64,000 bases of DNA from Thalia democratica (taxonomy: Eukaryota), in contig OZ241828.1 of NCBI GenBank assembly GCA_965202585.1, positions 61,566,001 to 61,630,000 of the forward strand, given 5' to 3'. Under the pieces are notes generated by a model. That model ran no database searches and was not told where the DNA came from. It was given only the letters and a program-made list of their open reading frames with translations. Every line of letters starts with the position of its first letter. The stretch's first letter is position 1. Positions 3,693-52,800 of this stretch are shown here, piece by piece. The position numbers were made by a program, and so were the translations under genes.

Positions 3693-3905
3693 TGATCATG
3701 CCAATTTGATCATCAGACTATAAGCTTTCGGTAGACTGAGACTGCTTTTGTCTTAATTAGGACTCATCAGTCTACCGATAGCTTGTGGTATGATGATCGA
3801 ATTTGCATGATCAACCCTTTGTAAAACTTGACCTTGTCTCACGGCAAACGAAAGTCCAGATTTCTGCTCTGCAGAATTTCCGCGATGTTTTTGTTGATTT
3901 TATTT
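3693..3905. mobile_element. Rearranged hammerhead-ribozyme retroelement (retrozyme/Penelope pLTR-like): inverted HHR-containing half 3693-3772 (-) fused to a forward half 3767-3905 (+)
   Basis: The reverse complement of 3693-3772 matches 50850-50926, and 3767-3905 matches 50882-51015. The minus-strand core reads CTGATGA GTCC TAATTA AGAC AAAA GCA GTC. The GAAA box is mutated, so it is probably inactive. Confidence 0.8.
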
Positions 3906-21112: not shown

Positions 21113-26009
<4,897 letters not shown>

Positions 26010-26450: not shown

Positions 26451-26784
26451 TGTTCCAATTTAGACTTTTAGTGACATTATGTTTTTTCGTATAAAATATA
26501 GAAATAAAAACTTAAAAGAAAACTTAATATTTGATAAGTTAAACTAGTTTTTCAAACTTTTTTTTTCCTAAAAGCACACTTTGCAGAAACTTTAGTAATG
26601 ATTGTCCGTTTACTAGTTAATTTCACATTTATTTTTACGTCAAAGTACTAACTATTGCCTTCGGATAAAAAATTTCGCCCGTTTTTTGAATTTTTGAGCT
26701 GAATTAATTTAGTGTTGTTACAACATGATTTAATATTTTCACTTTTATCTCCTAATATAATGTTTAAAACCTTTGTCGAATGAA

Positions 26785-29700
26785 TTATACCTACATTATA
26801 ATGACTAAAACAACATTTGTTTATTTTCAAATGCTGCTCTAGTCATTAAAATATAAGTCAACATAAATACAATATGTATTAGTATCACAAGTAGTTGCTT
26901 AAAATGGCTTTAATAGTTTTACTTTCCTGAATCTTGCAGAAATAAATTATCGTTTTTTTTTCTTTTAAAATGATGTTCTTACACTTTTTTATCTATATTA
27001 AGATAAACTTAATTATGATAAGATATGAGTGACAGAGTTTTATCAAAATATAAAGAAAAATCATGAAAGAACTTTAATAAAGAAAGAATAAATAAAGAAA
27101 ATATGAAGAACTCATAATAAACCCTTTATATAAGTTATAGTTTTTGTATTAACAAAATGAAAATAAAATTAATATTAGTTTATTAGTCATACTCGAACAC
27201 AGCTTAATGTCATTTACTTTCAGCTTTACAGTAAATTATAACAAAGTTCTGTTGAATACTTAATCACAAAATATAGTATAAAAACCAAAACTTTTGTAAG
27301 CGTTTACCTATATCATAACGACTAAAACAACATTTATTTAATTATCTAACAAATGCTGCTCTAGTCATTAAAATACAACTAAACTTAAATAAGTTTTTAT
27401 AATATAGGTTTAAAGTTTAAAATGTCATATTAGCTATACCGCAAAATTAATAAATAAATGTTTAGCAAAAATATGGTTTTCCAAACTCATTTCAATAATT
27501 GCCTAATTACAAATATTAGAAAAACTATTATATATTACCGAATTACCAGTTAATTACCAATTTACTTTATCACATTAGTTATCTCCCCAAAGATTGATAT
27601 CGCTCGCTATAGAAAACCCCGTTTTAAAATAAAGAACAAACCATAAGTTCGGAAAGCTAAGCTTCTTTATATTTGATTTTTTTTACTAACAATGTGTTGA
27701 TGACGTAGTTATCAAATACATGACATCATTCTTTGTCTGTTAAATTTATTCAAACAAAATCTAAAACCCTTTATACTTGTCGAACACGAAATAATAACTG
27801 TTGGACTCTAAAATTAATGCCTTAATAAAAAGTTGCAAAAAAATGTGTAATTGTATCTACCTGTATGTAGATTACTTAAACAACATTTGTATAAACATCT
27901 AACAAATGCTGCTCAAATCATTAAGTTACAAATTGTAAGCATCAAAACAAACTTATGAAATTTAGTTGAAAACTTATCTATGAACGAGCTTATATATGGA
28001 AAGTTTATCGTTACAAAATTTAACTAAAAATAAAGAAAACTTAAGCTAGAACGGGATTAAAACTTTTATTTATTATTTTTGCTAAAAAATTATATTAAAT
28101 AAGAAAAACAACAAGATTTTATAATGATTAATGAAAAAATATGCATTTACAGTTTATTTTTTTTTATTTAGAAAATTAGTTAAAGTATATTTTATTTTTG
28201 TTTCATATAAGGAACTTTTTCACCTTTTTAAGGTTAAAGAGAACAAAACTATTCTTAAAGCTGTAAGGTACGCTTTTTTGCTTGGTATCAAAGTGCGTAC
28301 CTCATCGGGTACTCTATCGTAGTTAAACTGTTGAATATGTATAACAAAAACAAAACGACTTTATTCTTTGTTTATTAAAATTACTCAAACAAAGCTTAAA
28401 GTCATTTACTTTCGGTTAAACACTATTTGTAAAAAACGTTTTTTGAAAACTCTTTACTCAATGTTCTAAGTTTAATGCCTGAAAAAAACAATAAAGTTTG
28501 TTCTATGTGTTTATCTGGATCATAATAACTAAAACAACATTTGCATAAATATCTAACAAATGTTGCTTAGTCATTAAAATACAAATAAACATGAATAAGC
28601 TTTGTTTCAAACATTTAACATGCGATCCAGATATATATATAACAAACTTAATTTACTATAAATTCAGAGAATTTATTGAGACAATTTTGACTTTTTACAA
28701 ATCGCAATAGATTGTATATTAACTGAAAAAATGGCTTTAAACTTTGATTAATACCTTTTTATAAACAATGGCTAAAGCCATTGTATTTTCAATTAAAAGT
28801 TTTAGTAGACTTATCATTCTTAAACCTTAATTGACTGTTAACAATAGTATGTCGAGCATGTTTTTCTATATCATAATGACTAAAACAACATTTGTATAAA
28901 TCTAACAAATGCTGCCCTAGTCCTTAAAATACAAACAAACTTAACTTAATAATAACAAATATTATTTTATTCAACTTTAAGTTTAATTTTAAGTTTCAAA
29001 CTGGACTTCCTTTTATTTTCGTTATTTACTCGTATTCCAACTTATACAACGACAGATTTGTGCATTAAAAAAATTTAATATTAAGTAAGTAATACTAGAA
29101 GAAGACTAGCTTCATTTAATATATGTTAGCAGTTAGTAGCGTATTAACTAAAAGAAAAGGACCTTAGAATTTGTTTCTTCCTATTATTAAACAAAGCCTA
29201 AAGTCATTTACTTTCAGATAAACAATAAACTGTAGTATACATTATTTATTTCATATTCAACTACAAAACAAAATACAAACACAATGTTTATGAATGTGTC
29301 TACCTATATTGTAATAACTAAAACAACATTTGTGTAAATATCTAACAAATGCTGCTCTAGTCATTAATATACAAGTAAACTTATAAGTTTTCTAATTAAT
29401 TGTTTGTATTCTTTTATAATTTAGACATTTTGTCATACTTTACCTAAATTCTAAGAAAAATACAGTAAAATAGTTATTCGTAACCACCAAGTTTCATGCC
29501 TGAATTTGTTTAACTTGTATCATAATGACTATAACAACATTTGCATAAATATCTAACAAATGCTGCTCTAGTCATTAAAATACAAATAAAAATAAATAAA
29601 CAACAATTTACATGTAGTCCAATGCAGCTGTAGACTGTGTATAAACTAAATAGAAATGACTTTAGTCACTGTTTACAATTTATCAAAACAAGTGCCATAA

Positions 29701-31224
29701 AGTCATTTATACTCGATTAAACAGTTTTTATTAAGCGGCAAATTTGAAACTTTACACGGAAGCGTATTTCAGATACGATGTAATTCAATTTTCTAAAAAT
29801 TATGATACGTATCAACTATTTTGATAAACTAAAATCCTGTAAAAGTAACAAATTTATTCAAATTTTATTAAATTACGCATCAAAACTTAGAAAACTAAAT
29901 AAAGAAATTAGCATGGCATAAATCTATTCCTATCAAAAAAAACTTAGCAACTTCAGATAATTAAAATAACAATAATGATAATCACGAAAAGCTTCACCTT
30001 TATCAATAACTCATTTATAAGTAAAACTTAACTTTTTAAGCAGTTAAAAATACTTCAATATCTAATTTTTTCCTATGTGTTTATCTATATAATAACGACT
30101 AAAACAAAATTTGTAAACATTTTAACAATGCTGCTCTAGTTATTAAAGTACAAGTAAACATAAATGAACAAGAATAATCTCTTTTTTTCATCTTTAAACT
30201 TAATTCTAAGTTTTTTCTTAATTTTACAACTTTTTTTTTTCAATTTTCTAACACACTAATGATTTTCCGATAAAAAATTGATGCACTTACAAGTTTTGGT
30301 ACAAAATAAAATAACTTTGGATATGTATTTGGGTATGTAAAATATTTTTACAAATATTTTGTGGATTGTGTATTAACTAAAAGCAAATGACTTTAACCTC
30401 TGTTTATTAATTTTATTTAAACAAAGCTTAGAGTCATTTACTTTTATTTAAACAGTAAATTCTGGTAGAAGGTCTTGCTTTCAATTTTAATCTAAAAATC
30501 AATTTAATTAAAATGTTTATTGAATGTGTTTACCTGTATCATAACGACTAAAACAACATTTGTATAAATAAACAACAAGTGCTGCTCTAGTCATTAAAAC
30601 ACAAGTAAACTGAAAAAACAAAGTTTGCACAGACTTGCTTAATTTTACGTAAACAAAACTTTTGTTACAGTTTTACAAATTCTTACCTGCATTTTAATGA
30701 CTTACAATATTTGGTCATAAAGTAAGACACTTTTGGAGTATATATTAGATTTATTTAAACAGTTTTTTGATCGTGTATTAACTAAAAGAAAATGACTTTA
30801 TTCTCTGTTTATTGATATATTAAAACAAAGCCTAAAGTCATTTACTTTTAGATAAACCGTAAACTGTATTACAAATAATTTTTTCCAATTATTCACATAA
30901 ATTTAAACTTTTAAGCTTTTCTTGAATTTGTTTAACTGTATCATAATAAATAAAACAGCATTTGCATAGATATCTAACAAATGCTGCTCGAGTCATTAAA
31001 ATACAAATAAACTGAATTGTAAAACATCATAAAATATCATTTTATAACTTCTTAATAGCATAATAAGACGCCACAAAAAAAGCTCACACGGAAACTAAAT
31101 ATTAAAGTATTTTAAATACTAAAAAGTAGTTATACGCTTATATTTACCGGTATTGTAATGGCTCTAACAATATTTGTACATTTATTTAACAAATATTGCT
31201 GGAGTCATTATGATACAAGCAAAC
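26785..31224 (-). ncRNA. Hairpin subfamily A, 11 copies; predicted 5p arm ~UUAAUGACUAGAGCAGCAUUUG
   Basis: Approximate copies: 26785-26862, 27302-27384, 27855-27935, 28509-28590, 28860-28940, 29298-29380, 29508-29590, 30079-30159, 30528-30610, 30930-31012, 31142-31224. The 27302 copy on the minus strand has 35 positions with 8 G.U pairs and only 2 mismatches. Confidence 0.8.
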
Positions 31225-34062
31225 TAAAATATACTTCCATTTAATATCAAAACTTCAATTTTTTTGGTATAATGTTGTTATTTCAAATAAATGTAAACAA
31301 ATTCATACGACTTCAAGAGCTTTAATTTTTAATATAAAAAATTTCAGTAAACTTTAAAAAAAAAATCTAATAGTGAAATGACTAAGAAAAATTCTAAAAA
31401 CAGCTTGCAGAAGTGACAGTATTTAAACTCAGTTGTTCAAGAAACTTTCCAAACGTATTAATTTTTGTGTTGCAATTAAAACGAAATGACTTTACTCACT
31501 GTTGTAAAGATTAATTCAACAGTGCCACAAAGTCATTTAATTTCAATTAAACATGAATGTAAATTGCTTTTATGAGCTTAATATTTCTAGCACACACAAT
31601 TTTCAGTTGGTTTTACTAACAGTTTGAAACAATTAAGTTGCTTCTTACTATTACTTTCAGTTAATAAGCTTCGCTCTTAAAATTTTCCAGATAAGTAACT
31701 TTTTGTGTTTTAACTGAAACGAAATGACTTTATTCACTGTTGATGATAATATTCCAACAGTGCCATAAAGTCATTTTATTTCAGTTAAACATGAGTGTAA
31801 ATTACTTTTAAAGGTTTATGTTTCCAGTTTGTTTTTTCAGTAGCTCGATTTATTTTTCATTTGTTTCCAGTACAAGGGCTTTCCTTAAAAAAATTCCAAG
31901 TTAAGTAATTTTTGTTTTTCAACTAAAATGGCTTTAAATACTGGTGAAAAAAAATCACTACAACAATGCCATAAAGTCATTTTATTTCAACCAAATATGA
32001 ATAAAAACTACTTTTATGAATAATATGTGTCCTGTTCATTTTATAAGTGCTTAAAAATATATTTTAAATTTCCGTTTATACATTTGTCCCCAAAACTAAG
32101 TTTTTTTTCTTAAAATTTTCCAAATAAGTAATTTTTGTGTATTAACTAAAACGAAATGACTTTATTCACTGTTGCTAATAATATTCCAACAGTGCCATAA
32201 AGTCATTTTATTTCAGTTAAACATGAGTGAAAATTACTTTGATGAGCTATATGATTCCTTTATTTTCAAGTAGTTTCATTTATTTCTTTCAAATACTTTA
32301 GTAATTAAACTTTCAAATGAAACTTTCCAAGTTAAATAATTTTTGTGTTACAATAAAAACGAAATGACTTTATTCACTGTTGTTGACAAGTTAACTCAAC
32401 AGTGCCACAAAGTCATTTTATTTCTATTAAACAGGATTAACAAGACATATTTAAATTTATACAATTCCTATATTCTAACACATTTAAAAATTTAAGTCAA
32501 AAGACCAAAAACTGATGGCGAAGTTAAAAATAAAGTTTACCTTAAGTATCATTTCATACCAGAAATTTTGACTTACCGAAGAAACTATTATACATACTTG
32601 AGTTTAAGTTACATATATTTACATCTAATAACATCGCTGTTTTGCCAAACGCATAATAAGTTTTAAAAGCTTTAATTTTTTATATTACTAAGCATTTGAT
32701 AATACTTTAAAATAATTAGTACTAATCTTGCTTACTTTTAAAACACCAAACCAACTGAAACTAGCTTTCAAAGCCTCAATACTAGCAGCCTGAAGGTAAT
32801 TTTGTTTTTAGCTTAAACTCGAACCAAAAAAAAACGCTATCTGTCTAAAACTGTTGTTGTGTGTTCTGAATTACTTAATTTTAATACTCGTGAAACTAAT
32901 ACCTTACAACTGATTATACTGTTTTTTTTAACTTATCAAATTCTACAAAATTCCTAGCAACATTACCTTTAAACTTTTAAATTCTTACATTATTACTACA
33001 TAACTACTTGTAAAGGTTCACTTTCTATTTAAAACCAGGTAGTAATGTTCAATTTTATAAGTTTTAAATAACAGTTGTGATTAGGAATAGATTAGAACTA
33101 TATAAAAATTAGCTTCACTTAAATTTGTTAAACAGCCAGTAATTACTGTTTAGCTAATAATTAAGATATAATAAAGCAGATTCACTACTTAAGCAAATTA
33201 TTTCTAATTTTACCACTACTTATAATCTAAAACACTGTATGTTACTTAGATAATAGTTATTATAAATTAGAAGTAATATCATAATGATGATAAAAATTAG
33301 TAAGTATTAGAAATGATTTAAAGTTCTCAACGTGAATAATCTGAAATTTTAAGTACATACATATAAAAATCATTAATTTTAAACAGCTAAAATTAGATAC
33401 GAGAAAAATCTAGAAAAAATGTAAAATTTTCCGTTAGATGGTGACGCGTCAAGTAAAAAGATTTAATTTTGATAAAAAAAGTAATTTATAACTGAATTTA
33501 TAAAGTTTTTTAGTTGATTAAACATTTAATTCTGTAATTTGAACACGAAAATTTTAATCAAAACATTAGCTGTTTAATAAACAACAACAACTTACATTTT
33601 GTACTTTTTCGATTGAAATAACTAAGCTTGAAGTACTCAATGGCTAGCTTTGACTTTATATTTACAAAACTTAGTTTGTATTTTTTTTTACTAACTACTA
33701 TATACGAAAATTCTTAACCTTTCTAGGCTATGATTAAACAACATTACGGCTTTTAATATTTGTAGCTGAGATTTACTTGCTTTTGTAAATGAAACTTTAA
33801 ACCTACTGCCCATTTAAAAATCATTTTCAAAATTGGTTTTACTGAATTTATACAACTAAAGTAGCGTACTTTTCAATAATTAACTAAGTCTTCAAACACT
33901 TACATATAAAAATACTGCAAAAGTATAAAAAATGCAACTAGTACTTTTACTACAAAATATTTCAAAGTAATTTTGGTGTACTAACTAAAGTCAAATGACT
34001 TTATTCACTGTTGTTAGTATTTATTTCAACAGTGCCACAAAGTCATTTAATTTTAATCAAAC
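27145..34062 (-). ncRNA. Hairpin subfamily B, ~14 copies; predicted 5p arm ~WAAAUGACUUUAUGGCACUGUU or UAAAUGACUUUAGGCUUUGUUU
   Basis: Approximate copies: 27145-27230 and 27710-27787 (both degenerate), 28343-28421, 28721-28796, 29146-29223, 29643-29722, 30375-30453, 30780-30857, 31474-31552, 31711-31790, 31921-31995, 32143-32222, 32352-32432, 33982-34062. The AAATGACTTTA...TAAAGTCATTT arms flank variable loops. Confidence 0.78.
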
Positions 34063-35350
34063 ATGGTTAAAAACTACTTTATGATCTAAATCTTTTTAGA
34101 TAATAGTACTTTAAAACTATGTCTGCTTGTTTTATTCTATTCAATTATTTCCAGATAAATGTTTTACACAAGAATTTTGCTTAGTTAAATGTCGGGCTTT
34201 TAAATTTATTTAAAAATTCAATGAATTGAAGTTTTAAAAACTTATAATATAAGAATTTGTTTTACATTTTGCGATAAATTCTTATGTTCCTACAAGGTTG
34301 AGCATCTACACAAAATCAAAAGCTTATAGCATAGTTTGACAAAAACTCTAACATTTCGTAACTTTTTACTCAACTCTTTTAAGAGTTATGCAAAAAAGCT
34401 TTATAAGATTAACCAACCACTGTAACTTTACTTAATTGAACTTAATATGTATACTTTTCACTTAAAATTGCAACATAGATAAAACATTTGAAAAGATAAA
34501 AATTTGAATAAATAGCAGTAGCAGCATTAGCTTTAAAAACGGCCTATTTTATCTAGAAATTCCAAATTAACCTGAGTTAGCTTTCATAGCCTGAATATAG
34601 TCGCTTAACTAACTAATATTAGCTTTACTGAACCTCGTACCAAAATAAAGCATTCATATTTGTCTAAAACTGCTGTCATTTATTTCCCTTACAGCTAAAC
34701 TACAGCTTTTGTATAACAATACCATAAAATATAACTTAATTACTAACTTTTATCAAACCCAACAAAATTTATAGCAACACTACCTTTCAAACTTTTAACG
34801 TTTCATTAGTATTAGCATTCTAACTACTTCTCAAGCTTTCACTTTTGGTATAAAATCCAGTTGGCAAGGAATTCTTTTATACACATTGATAACAGTTAAT
34901 AATTAGATACTTTATTACTGCAAAAATTAGCTTCACTTATAAGTTATAAGCTAACTTTGTTAAACAGACAATAATTAAGCCTTTAACAATAGTGATAGAG
35001 CACTTTAGCAAATTATTTCCAATTTCTTTGTTTAAATCAGTGAAAAGTAGGTAGATAATAAAGTAAGGATTAAAACTGATTAGTTATGAGGATGACAGAA
35101 ATTATCAAATAGTAAATAAAACAGATTAAAACTAATTAACAAAGATTATATAACATTATAAAGGTTTATAATCGAACACTAATTTGAAACAATGAAAGTG
35201 CAAAAAGATAGTAAACTAGAGAAAAATTTTGTAAAATTTTCCATTAATCAACAACGTGTCTGTAAAAGTTTTAGTTTTAATGAAGTAAATATTTTATGAT
35301 TACTGAAAACTTATGTAATGAAATCAACATTTAATTTTATAATTTCAAAG
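32750..35350 (+). repeat. Diverged direct duplication (~32750-33560 vs ~34570-35350) following the last two B hairpins
   Basis: Colinear shared blocks: tagctttca.agcct.aata; tgtctaaaactg.tgt; tagcaaca.tacctt; aaaaattagcttcactta...tttgttaaacag; tgtaaaattttcc.tta. Confidence 0.65.
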
Positions 35351-43816: not shown

Positions 43817-46800
43817 TTACATCCCGTCTTGCTGTAGCAGGTTGGCTGTTTCGTCCAAGCTTGCCGACATGTTTCCATCTGAAAAGAAAAAGTTCGGTCA
43901 GATTTGTACAAACGATCATTATTTAAAGGAGAAGTTTATTATAAGAAAAGAAAAGTTGATCAAGAGATGACACTTTTGAAATATCAGTTCATTGCATAAA
44001 AATTGCAAAACACAGCAGAAGTGTCACCTAATAATTTTTTTTAGAATTTTAAAATATACCCATTGATTTCTTACACGTCCTTTTATTCAAACAAAACAAC
44101 TTTACTTATGTTCAATTTTCAAAACAATAGAACATATAGGTCTCTTAGTCTTTATCTATTGGGGTAGAGAGACCAAAAAATAAAATGAAACAGTTCAACT
44201 TTTTTTTTGTTGCAGTTATAACTTATGCTCCTAAATGAAACACCATTTAAAGCTTTCCCTAAACATCGATACCCTAATAAATAAACAAAAAACTCCAATA
44301 AACTTCAAGAAGTTTTAGTAACAAAACAAACTTTCTTGCTGCTGTCTCGTGTTGAAATCCCTCGAATCACGTTCGAACACGGAATCGCTGTCGTGCATGA
44401 CGTCATTGACCACGTCACAATCGTAATCGTCATCCGTATCGTCTTGCTCGTCACTCGATGTCGCAACGGAGTAGGAGACGTCGCATGGAACGTTCAGGTC
44501 GATGTAGTCCTGAAAATATAAATATATCTTAATATATCAATTTATGAATGTAAAAATAAAGTAGCTTTTTTGGTAAGGCTGAATTAAATGCTAGTACTAA
44601 AGAAAACAAACAAAAGAAACAAAGTTTGATGAACATTTAAATAACCAACTTGCAAACGATTAACCTGAAAAGAATTGTTAATAATGCAGTGTAACAACTT
44701 TTGGTTACTTTTCGATTACAGAAAAAGTAATTATTAATGTAAATGTGAATAAATGAGTGTGATACACCATGCTTGATTATACCAAGTATTGGGCAAGTTA
44801 TAAAAAAAAACTATTACTATTTTATCATATTTACTTAAAACTTAAAATATCAAATAATTAATATCATGGCATAATAATTAACAGTTAGGCATGAGTTTCA
44901 TTTTAATGATTCCATAACTTTGTAAGAAACATTATTTTCTCTACTAAACAGTAAAAAATAAAAACAAACATGTGTATATACTTTTTTCTAAATGTACTAA
45001 AATTTAATGTTAAACAAGTTCACTAAGTTTAATGACCTTCATAACTACAGAACATAATCATATTTAAAACTGATTTATTATGGTATTATTAATTCAATTA
45101 ATCAAAATATAATACTCGTATGGCAGTTTATGTAGCAATTAATTAAATAAAAACAATAAATTCCACAAATATCCACACGTTTCTATGTCTTATCAATTTA
45201 AAACTTAAGTAAAAAATTATTATAAAACTTCATTAATTAACATTTACTGTTGTAAAAAATGTAAGATAAATAGGTTAAAATTGCTGAGCGCACGATAATT
45301 CAAATTCTAAAAAACTTAAAGGGCAACAACTTAAAAACTAATACACATTTTAAAAGGAAAAAAAAAGTATGTTGATCTTATTAATATCTACAAACCATTT
45401 TTTTCTTTTTGTAAAATATTATATTTATTTTTAGATATGGCTAAAATTAGTTTTAAAGTACACTTATTTTTAATAAATTTTAATATTTTAAAAAATATTT
45501 AAAATTTTACAAAAAATATATAACGATTTATAGATATTGATATGACATAAAAACGTAATTTAATTTTTATTTCAAATATATGTTACTTTCTGAGTCATAG
45601 TCTATTAAATATTTTTTTATGAATTTGAATTGTCATGTAATCAAAATTGCTATACAACTTCGAAAATTGTATGACAATTACTTTAAAAAACAAATACATA
45701 ACATACATACAAACATAAAATTATTTTCAAAATCTTATAGCTTCTATACTTTTGTAAACTTCCACAAGTCATACATTGGTGCAAATAAGTTTAACTGTTT
45801 TTTTAAACTAAAACTATAAATCTTAATGCAATAAAGAATATTTGGAACATTCGTTATACTTTATTATTGTTAAAAGGTCTTATTAGTTCATAAATACTAA
45901 ACAAAACCCATTAAAATAATATAAAACTTAAGTACTAATAAAAGCAGCTTTGTTTACTGTTATATTTTTCTCAGATTTAACAAGGTTCATCACAGTTTAT
46001 TTTAACCGTAACTGTAATTAAAAGGTTTATAAAAGTGGTAAGTTGCTTAAATTAGATTGATGGACAACATAAATTACTGTTGATAAAATATTGTTACATT
46101 TACTTGTAGCAATAAAACTTTATTAGGGTTTTTTTTAAATGTTTTAACAGTAATTTTATAATTTTAGAGACTGTATGATGAAATAAAATAGCTTTAAGAT
46201 AATGTAAATTGTTTTTAAGAACATGAGATTTTACATGATTTTTATAAGAGTGTTTCAGTTCAAAAATAAAAATAATTTCATTATGTTTAAATTGTTTATG
46301 TTTTACTAGGAGGTAAACACTATAAAAAAAATTTTTACTCTTGCATGTTTTTTGTAGAAAAATACAACTGAGAATACTATTTTACTATTTGTATATTTCT
46401 GAATATATAGATAAATTGATTTAGAGTAGTAAACACTTTTATAAAACATTTATTTTAAATCTAAAAAGACTAGTCAAATTAATAAATTAAATAAATAAAT
46501 CTGTGTGGCAATACATGAAGTAATTAATTAAACTGTTTTTTGATCACAATAGTAAAACTCCATGGATAATTACAACATTTAACCTTTATGTAAAAATTAA
46601 AATAAATTTTACCTTCACAGAACTTAATACATGATCATTAGTTTTATATAAGTAAAGTGTCTACTTAAATTTATGTTCGGATTGTAAAGACACTTTTATA
46701 AGATTTAAAACACGAATAAACTTTACAAGTTATTTTGAAACTTATATAAGTTTAAATTTCAACCAGATAAAAATTTTTTAATGTAATCATTGATTTTATC

Positions 46801-49800: not shown

Positions 49801-52800
49801 TTTTATAGTATGTTTGTATGATTCTAGTAATACGAAATGCTTAAAAACAAAAAGCTTACATATACTGCATTATCAAAAAGCAAATATAATATTATTTTAC
49901 AAAATACGACAAAACATACATTAAACTTGTTTAAATCAAGAATTTTATGAACAAACCTTATTAATGGCGAGGAACTCCATACCCCTGGCCACCTGGTAAC
50001 TGGCGCTTATGAGGTCCTGATACGTGACGTTCCTGGGTTCGAATCCCGCCTCCGACTGATTTGTGGTGGGAATTTCTGGCAAGTCGATGTTGGATGGTCT
50101 GTTTCTGCGTAGAAAGTCCCTGAAAAATATTTGGTTGTTATGTTGATGATTTATATGATGTTACAAACAGAATTGCGCTAAAGTTTGTTATAAAATAATG
50201 TAATAAGTTCTCGTAGTAGAGATAATTGGTTGTTTTATACAGCATACTAAATTATTTTAAAAAAATATTTAAAAAAATTATTTAATGTAAGTAGTTTTAA
50301 TCTAATAGTTTACAAAAAAAGTGTGTGCTTAAAAACTAATTTTAAACAAAACTTACAATCTGAGCTAATGTAATTTAGTTACTTTGATCATCTTAATTAA
50401 ATCAAAGAGACTTTTAAAAACTTTAACATCTGCTATACTTAATTTTCTCAAAAAGCACTTGGAATTGAGTGGGCACTTAATAAAAAGTAAAGTATCGCGA
50501 CTATATATAGAAACTGATTCATATCGATTTATTTTTATCGACTTTTCGAAGCTGTTTTCTTTTTGTAAAGCGATTAAAAATAAAATATTCTTACGCAATT
50601 TCAAAGTTGTTTTTATTGATTTTATTGTTGGCAAACGAAAGTCCGGACTTGTTCTGCAGACTTTCGCCGATTTTGTTGATTGTACTAAAACGAGCGTACC
50701 AGATGTCTTGCCTAGTGGACAATGTTTTAAACGTTGCACGGCAAAGACAATGCTGACGTCACTAATCATTGCCAGCAAATGGTTGCTTCATGCGAAAGCA
50801 TGATAAACCGTTTGTAGATTGACGACTACAAGTTTTTCGGTTGTGACTGACTGATGAGTCCTAATAAGGACGAAACCGGTCTCAGTCTACCGAAACTTGT
50901 GGTCTGATGATCGAATTGGCATGATCAACCCTTTTGTTAAATTTGAGCTTGTCTCACGGCAAACGAAAGTCCGGACTTGTTCTGCAGACTTTCGCCGATT
51001 TTGTTTATTGATTTTAGTTTAGTTTTTACCACATATGCGCTTTCTATAAATGCTGTTTCTGTTATTGTTGTTGTTGTTGTTGTTGTTATAATACTAAGAT
51101 ATATTTTACTAGCCATCACCTACAACATTTAAACTTTAAAATTCAAATAACTTCAGTTAATACTCAGTATTTCAGTTTTTTAGTTGTATGTTTAGTTGTA
51201 CACTATTCCAGTATAATGCATATGATTGGCACACATTAATATACCATGTAGATTTTTTGTAGATGTACTGAAAAATATAACAAATCATTAAAATTTATAA
51301 CCTCAAACTACCCTGACTAGCGTACTCTGTTAGCAAGCATATAATAAAAATAATTGATAAACAAAATACAATATTCGCCTCAAATTGCCCAGACTGACAT
51401 ATTCAGCGATCAAATATAAAAATTAAACATAATTGATAATAAACAAACATATCCCACCTCAAATTTCCCTGACTGGCGTACTCAGTGATGAGGTACAAGG
51501 CGCCCTCCTGGGTCGACATGCCGATCAGGCTGATTATGTTTATGTGGGGCCCGATGCGCTTCAGTTGCTCCATCTCCGTCACCAGGTCGTTCACGTCCTT
51601 CTCACTGTTGTTATCTGCACAAGAAATTGTACTGATTTATTTATAACTATTTTATGAAGTTAAGAACAGTAGCATGTATAGTGGCTGTAAAGGGTTATAA
51701 AATAATTATTTTTTAAATTTATTATATTTGTAGAAAAAATTAACTTTATCTGTTGTTATCTGCAGAAGAAATTGTATTTAAGAAAAAAGTACTAATTGGT
51801 TTATTTATAACTGTTTTATCAAGACATAAACAGTAGTATATTAAGTGTAAAAGGGTTATGTTAGTGTTTTTAGGAACTTGGTATATTTGTAAAAAAATAA
51901 CTTTATGGTGGTTGTAGAATAGAATTCAAGTATGTATTTTTTTTCGATCAGTAATTAAGTTGAGTTACATGAGAATTTTTGTTGAAATAACAAGGATTAA
52001 TAGATATTATCTAATCTTTTAAAGTTTTTGCAAATAATTTGATCGTTTATCTCCACTTATTTTACAGATTTAATCCTTGGAAAAACAAACTAAAACGTGT
52101 GAATCTAAATTTAGAATGTTAATTATTTTTATTTTATTACATAAAATGCTAATATATCTGTATAAAATTTTATAACTACAATTTTTAACAGAACGGTCAA
52201 TTTAGTTTTATTAATATGTAAAAATAGAACTAACAATGGACAATAAAAACTGAATCCCAACATTTAAAATTTACATATAGGAAATAATAAATTATTTTAT
52301 GGAGGAAAACAAATAAAACTTAGACAGTTTCCTTTACAAGAACGGAAACGTGAATTTTCCACGGGAAGTATTAAAAAACCAATAAAAATTACACATCCCA
52401 TCTCAATTAAATCGAGCGACTTGAGAAAGTCACTGTATGAAGTATAAGTGGGTTTCATTTGTGACGACTTTTTATAATATTGTAGTTAAAACGAGTACTA
52501 AACCTTTAATGTTTAGATAATATTTTTACAAACTCACTTATCCAAACCATATTGTACTAAAATAATAATCTAATGTTGTTTCTAAACAGAAGTTAAAATA
52601 ATCTATATTATTTAAGTAAATACACTAATGCATTATAAAAATGAAAAGAAAATAAACTAGAATACTTGTAAAAACATGTAAATGTTAACATTAAAGTACA
52701 TCAATCAGTTTGGGTTTATTTTGATAATGATTAGTCAAAATACCTCATTACATATTTTAAAATAAAAAAAAACGTATTTATCATGAAACCAAATGTTTTG

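Follow-up and report, generated by a model that had tools for sequence, protein, structure and literature searches.

A stretch of 64,000 nucleotides (nt) from Thalia democratica (GenBank assembly GCA_965202585.1, contig OZ241828.1, positions 61,566,001 to 61,630,000 of the forward strand; hereafter the window, in whose own numbering all positions are given) carries 25 related hairpins on its minus strand between 26784 and 34062. They comprise 11 copies of type A, 12 of type B and two B relics, all in a single orientation and within 7.3 kb. The hairpins are almost certainly a selected RNA structure of the minus strand. As putative microRNA precursors they are a good candidate, and the locus as a whole is probably, judging by features of the sequence, a lineage-specific polycistronic microRNA gene cluster transcribed from that strand. 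Most likely these would be multi-copy microRNA genes, ordinary in kind and undescribed so far. An initial annotation had placed the cluster at 27302–32222 with two hairpin families, A and B. The cluster is indeed there, but it runs from 26784 to 34062, and B, which stands as a family, consists of two subfamilies, B-i (B1, B2, B3, B5 and B6) and B-ii (B4 and B7–B12).

Hairpin shape and register

Copies are 80–86 nt long; in 18–20 of them a stem of about 36 bp (35–36 positions) is closed by a loop of 9–14 nt, and folding free energies (dG) lie between −22 and −40 kcal/mol with z-scores of −4 to −11. RNAalifold recovered the same hairpin independently. In a fold scan of the whole window (26% G+C, zero gaps) the background for 90-nt segments was −10.1 ± 4.7 kcal/mol and the intact hairpins stood at −27 to −41; inside the cluster the scan found no stable hairpin family other than A and B. 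Covariance models were built separately from A and from B and run over the entire 64 kb. All copies were recovered inside the cluster, and nothing outside it in the window scored above 23 bits.

The two families had been proposed to share one register, in which GUUUA at the stem base is followed at a fixed distance by AAUGACU, here called the core. Both the pattern count and the spacing bear this out. Allowing one mismatch, GUUUA-N8-WW-AAUGACU matches the window 26 times against 0.95 expected, a number that 0 of 100 shuffles reached; all but two of the 26 matches fall within the cluster, and 19 of the cluster matches are on the minus strand. From the stem-base G to the start of the core is 15 nt in every A copy and in 11 of the 12 B copies, which puts AAUGACU at positions 16–22 of the 5′ arm. 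The exception is B2, where a 1-nt insertion shifts the core one position further from the base. Pairing geometry is likewise the same in A and B, position i pairing with 84−i, and almost all intact copies leave position 14 unpaired, with varying letters (U.U in A; U.C or A.C in B).

The cluster is a mixture of about 18 working-looking copies and several dying ones (Table 1). The copies listed in the initial annotation are real, but decayed copies are present: A3, A8, B9 and the two B relics.

Pairing and strand

Substitutions had been expected to preserve pairs more often than in shuffled controls, and they do so in the A, B and combined A plus B alignments. In family A, 91.8% of cells are paired against 90.0 ± 0.5% after shuffling (1 of 500 shuffles reaches the observed value), and six pairs are changed on both sides against 2.5 expected (6 of 500 reach six); in family B, 93.6% of cells are paired against 87.2% (0 of 500), and eight pairs are changed on both sides against 4.5 (1 of 500 reaches eight); in the part of A plus B that is in register, 91.0% of cells are paired against 78.4% (0 of 500), and changes on both sides number nine against 7.1; since the copies are related, such shuffle-based counts overstate the number of independent pairing events. 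Sliding the partner by 1–3 columns lowers pairing to 33–51% in all three alignments.

The particular changes that had been singled out are present. Opposite the core, on the 3′ arm (3p), substitutions keep pairing as wobbles: pair 18–66 is U-A in seven copies and U.G in three, and pair 19–65 is G-C in six and G.U in three. Copy A11 has two two-sided changes, C-G to U-A at pair 30–54 and A-U to C-G at pair 23–61, and B2 has one inside the core, A-U to G-C. A11 also carries four disruptive changes, at pairs 8–76, 13–71, 20–64 and 24–60. Alone among the copies it has its more stable fold on the plus strand (−30.7, the minus strand giving −27.8). Its minus strand contains four A.C mismatches, so the strand asymmetry seen in related copies is gone.

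The asymmetry itself is marked. Minus-strand pairs include 103 G.U against 14 A.C mismatches, and the copies of family A other than A11 have folding energies of −28 to −40 for the minus strand but only −7 to −19 for the plus strand. Counted as distinct derived states, 25 transitions make G.U and 11 make A.C (p = 0.014); in the intact A copies the figures are 12 and 2. Strand-symmetric mutation predicts equal numbers, and the excess of G.U-making changes therefore indicates that the structure was selected as RNA of the minus strand.

Duplication and conservation

Nested tandem duplication gave rise to the roughly 18 intact hairpins, which belong to three related types (A, B-i and B-ii). The unit consists of an A hairpin upstream, a spacer of 62–87 nt and a B-i hairpin, and has been duplicated in blocks that include a super-unit of four hairpins. 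Among the four intact A to B-i units, pairwise identity is 0.83–0.85 in the hairpins, 0.45 in the spacer and 0.31–0.36 in the outer flanks, the last being about random for the composition. As spacers and flanks are so far below the hairpins, the duplications must be old and the hairpins alone preserved. The hairpins have been kept by purifying selection as RNA hairpins while the surrounding DNA was randomised.

Among the paralogues of the cluster, conservation falls from arms to loop to flanks and peaks over a 7-nt seed-like block: it is 0.96–1.00 in the core, 0.76–0.93 in the arms and 0.49–0.72 in the loop. Parsimony events per column are likewise fewest in the core (0.14–0.43) and most numerous in the loop (2.3–3.2).

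Predicted guide strand

No block of the hairpin is more conserved than the 7-nt core: parsimony assigns it four changes, and its 3p complement 12. The letter at position 14 is variable, whereas that at 15 is constant within a family (U for A, A for B); positions 16–22 are fixed across A, B-i and B-ii, and position 23, with most positions beyond it, differs between A and B. Positions 10, 12, 15, 23 and 24 flip on both arms between the families while 16–22 stay unchanged. This is the pattern expected of guide nucleotides 1, 2–8 and 9, and it favours a 5′ end at position 15. Microprocessor measures about 11 bp from the basal and about 22 bp from the apical junction, with an optimum stem of 35 ± 1 bp; the stem length and the lower stem of 13–15 nt fit these rules. 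The basal rule predicts the 5′ end at position 14 and the apical rule at position 15; with an end at 14, A and B would have seeds with different first letters. On balance the best reading, slightly more likely than not, is a predicted guide from the 5′ arm (5p) with exactly the seed AAUGACU.

By this reading Drosha/DGCR8 would cut 13–14 nt above the stem base, Dicer would remove the loop, and the 5p strand from position 15 (U in A, A in B) would enter Argonaute. A, B-i and B-ii would all present the seed AAUGACU and repress mRNAs with AGUCAUU sites, and the many copies may serve dosage.

Several results weigh against a microRNA cluster of this form. A basal UG is found in 10 of the 12 B copies and in only about three of the 11 A copies, the CNNC motif downstream of the hairpins is not conserved in the cluster copies examined, and the stems are nearly perfect, as in young hairpins or those resembling small interfering RNA (siRNA) precursors. 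A, B-i and B-ii each have a UGU near the apex, a triplet that AT-rich sequence often contains. Structure-neutral changes that make G.U, normalised for opportunity, number four on the 5p and eight on the 3p arm, which is not significant (p = 0.31). Within a family the two arms are both well conserved, which leaves room for a product of the 3p arm or of both arms. The claim of the initial annotation that the 5p arm is the guide is thus suggested by the conservation profile and not by the wobble asymmetry. Rfam 15 gave no match at gathering score in the 64 kb, the best sub-threshold matches being generic hairpins of at most 38 bits against cut-offs of 45–118 (the top one 38.2 against 111). Nor did metagenome scans yield an orthologous cluster: the B-ii 5p sequence had no match there, and the A 5p pattern matched 43 contigs, none forming this hairpin. 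We take these 43 for chance matches; the best-folding ones examined look unrelated. A literature search with the predicted mature sequences and the heptamer found nothing relevant. Novel embryo-enriched microRNAs are reported in the genome paper of Salpa thompsoni (PMC5174732).

It is unlikely, in our judgement, that the locus is a microRNA cluster with another register or another guide arm. In the former case Drosha would cut after position 13, as the human rule (UG at −14/−13) would have it from the basal UG at positions 0–1 of the B copies, and A would have the 5p seed UAAUGAC and B the related, though different, AAAUGAC. In the latter case 3p guides would give A, B-i and B-ii three unrelated seeds, and AAUGACU would be kept as a duplex end or a processing determinant. 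The upper 3p arm of family A has indeed collected nine parsimony events against 13 in the matching part of the 5p arm, and the two arms do not differ significantly in wobble-making changes. Both versions have difficulty with an invariant block that is exactly 7 nt long and bounded by the family-specific positions 15 and 23. The 3p version is further opposed by the lower conservation of the 3p complement relative to the core (12 changes against four) and by the duplex end at the 5p start, which is all A-U beside a mismatch and is not stronger than the other end in A and weaker than it in B.

One candidate homology was tried and rejected. Family A contains UGACUAGA, the start of protostome miR-279. 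On that assignment the lower stem would have to be 17 nt long, the guide would exclude the AA of the conserved block, and A and B would have different seeds.

Probable common origin and core variants

A and B likely derive from one ancestral hairpin duplicated in place. Each covariance model detects the other family at 28–45 bits, where the best unrelated hairpin reaches at most 23; A and B are alike in length, in the i+j=84 geometry, in the GUUUA base and in the unpaired position 14; and A and B-i are neighbours in the duplication unit. When the core and base are set aside, the 5′ arms of A and B-i agree at about 13 of 29 positions in consensus sequences counted by hand, a weak excess over the 31% expected. 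The common descent put forward in the initial annotation is thus favoured by shared geometry, cross-detection and adjacency, and is likely rather than proven.

Four copies had been named as carrying changed cores, AAUGGCU, AAGGACU, AAUAACU and AAUGAUU, and all four are as described. The further suggestion that some paralogues are changing their target specificity is weak, because three of the four (A3, A8 and B2, with 8, 7 and 5 broken pairs) rank with the most damaged or diverged copies in their families, leaving A5 as the sole case of a changed core in a hairpin that is normal in other respects. Decayed copies with an intact core are B9 and the two B relics. The core variants of A3, A8 and B2 look like decay rather than new specificity, and A5 is the one credible seed variant. 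A5 and B2 lie in the same two-hairpin unit, for which relaxed constraint is as good an explanation as new specificity.

Comparison with known clusters

The microRNAs miR-430 of zebrafish and miR-427 of Xenopus, which clear maternal mRNA in the early embryo, resemble the Thalia cluster in having tandem hairpins of a few subtypes in interleaved repeating units, apparently with one seed, in their growth by nested tandem duplication, and in a high copy number that suggests a dosage role. They differ in seed (AAGUGCU against AAUGACU, without sequence relationship), in being 3p products where the shared block here is on the 5p arm, and in copy number (50 to several hundred against about 25). A role in maternal clearance would be an analogy only. 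We consider it improbable that the locus is an independently evolved device of this kind in a pelagic tunicate, that is, an early-embryo cluster that would clear maternal mRNAs with AGUCAUU sites and from which the A5–B2 unit (AAGGACU and AAUGGCU) would have branched off with a shifted seed and be gaining new targets.

Nematode mir-35-42, the Drosophila miR-310s, and mammalian miR-290/302 and C19MC also consist, like the present cluster, of paralogous hairpins a few hundred bases apart on one strand with a shared seed, their arms conserved and their loops and spacers variable. The human mir-548 family, derived from the miniature inverted-repeat transposable element (MITE) Made1, shares with it the many copies of near-perfect short inverted repeats. 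Unlike mir-548, the Thalia copies are in tandem on one strand at a single locus, with flanks that are co-duplicated rather than independent.

That last comparison bears on a reading of the hairpins as non-functional repeat DNA, a foldback or MITE-like palindrome or a satellite, locally amplified and homogenised by gene conversion, that would have no RNA role. Such DNA would account for short near-palindromes whose plus strand folds too (nearly equally in some B-ii copies) and for a region built of nested tandem duplications; the copy search, moreover, covered 64 kb of the genome. We regard it as very improbable because neutral palindromes and conversion tracts predict none of the following: all 25 copies in one orientation, with none elsewhere in the window; similarity that ends at the hairpin edges despite co-duplicated spacers; strand-asymmetric mismatches, with G.U far above A.C; and two-sided compensatory changes beyond shuffled controls. 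Signs of a MITE (dispersed copies in both orientations, or a terminal-repeat or target-site-duplication structure) were not seen in the 64 kb. Equally improbable are other structured RNAs, either endogenous siRNA precursors of the short-hairpin kind cut by Dicer only or protein-binding hairpins in a long non-coding RNA: the nearly perfect stems and the unconserved CNNC, a Microprocessor flank motif, would suit them, but a microRNA signature is seen in the stem length (about 36 bp), the size of the loop, the constant 13–14 nt of lower stem and the seed-like 7-nt peak, and known hairpin-RNA siRNA loci have far longer stems.

Tunicate microRNA sets are heavily remodelled, and pelagic species have barely been surveyed. 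If expressed, the predicted microRNA cluster would be among the largest same-seed clusters known in a tunicate. From its series of paralogues one can read off the constrained parts of a precursor (seed, stem base and the fixed mismatch at the predicted cut site) and, because intact, weakened and dead copies are found together, the growth and decay of such clusters as well. The cluster offers no new kind of mechanism.

Hairpin copies

Coordinates and features of the copies are collected in Table 1.

Table 1. Hairpin copies of the minus-strand cluster, in window coordinates (dG in kcal/mol; bits, covariance-model score)
Copy	Coordinates	Strand	Features
A1	26784..26862	-	Core AAUGACU; short loop; basal 5 bp altered; 71.8 bits
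A2	27302..27384	-	Intact; 3p GUCGUU gives U.G wobble opposite core; dG −36.7, z −10.7
A3	27855..27937	-	Core AAUGAUU; lower stem gone; decaying; z −4.1; 8 of 35 pairs broken
A4	28509..28590	-	Intact; 3p GUUAUU gives G.U wobble
A5	28860..28940	-	Core AAGGACU in otherwise normal hairpin; dG −30.6, z −8.0; 2 broken pairs
A6	29298..29380	-	Intact; 98.9 bits
A7	29509..29591	-	Intact
A8	30079..30159	-	Core AAUAACU; 1-nt deletion in 5p arm; poor fold, decaying; dG −15.8, z −2.4; 7 broken pairs
A9	30528..30610	-	Intact; most stable copy, dG −39.5
A10	30930..31012	-	Intact
A11	31142..31224	-	Core intact; most diverged such A copy; 2 compensatory and 4 disruptive changes
B relic	27146..27229	-	Partner of A2; fold lost, z +0.5; 33 bits
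B relic	27705..27787	-	Partner of A3; 25.9 bits
B1 (B-i)	28339..28421	-	Downstream partner of A4
B2 (B-i)	28718..28797	-	Core AAUGGCU, compensated by AGCCAUU and preceded by a 1-nt insertion; weakened upper stem; partner of A5; most diverged B-i, 5 of 31 pairs broken
B3 (B-i)	29141..29223	-	Partner of A6
B4 (B-ii-like)	29639..29722	-	Most diverged among intact B-ii
B5 (B-i)	30370..30453	-	Partner of A9
B6 (B-i)	30775..30857	-	Partner of A10
B7 (B-ii)	31469..31552	-	Start of tandem array with period 206–238 nt
B8 (B-ii)	31708..31790	-	Zero broken pairs; dG −36.9
B9 (B-ii)	31914..31996	-	Core intact, 3p arm decayed; z −0.9; 10 broken pairs
B10 (B-ii)	32139..32222	-	Zero broken pairs
B11 (B-ii)	32347..32432	-	B-ii copy
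B12 (B-ii)	33978..34062	-	5′-most hairpin of the minus-strand cluster; 1.5 kb from B11; 92.7 bits

The flanks of B8, B9, B10 and B12 (31440–32260 and 33950–34100) hold an outer complementary pair, AAGUARUUU upstream and AAAUUACUU downstream. It makes an extra outer helix of 8–10 bp below the hairpin, across an internal loop, which B7 and B11 do not have.

Genomic surroundings

On the plus strand a papain-family protease gene has exons from 22875, the last ending near 26009. A receptor-type tyrosine kinase gene on the minus strand has its kinase exons at 47.7–60.2 kb and a probable last coding exon, identified by eye only, at 44318–44536. From the positions of these two genes the cluster is intergenic, about 10 kb downstream of the kinase gene and in the same orientation.

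An old segmental duplication (32762–33543 against 34578–35348, about 67% identity, offset about 1.81 kb) brackets hairpin B12, which places the upstream edge of the cluster within duplicated DNA; the other copy of the segment yielded no hairpin. Directly upstream of the protease exons, at 21812–22473, is a tandem array of a 58-nt unit repeated 11.4 times (Tandem Repeats Finder score 918). Very stable palindromic structures outside the cluster lie at 3705–3801 and 50816–50905 (dG −44 and −37 per 90 nt); at 23 bits or less with both covariance models, they are unrelated to the A and B hairpins.

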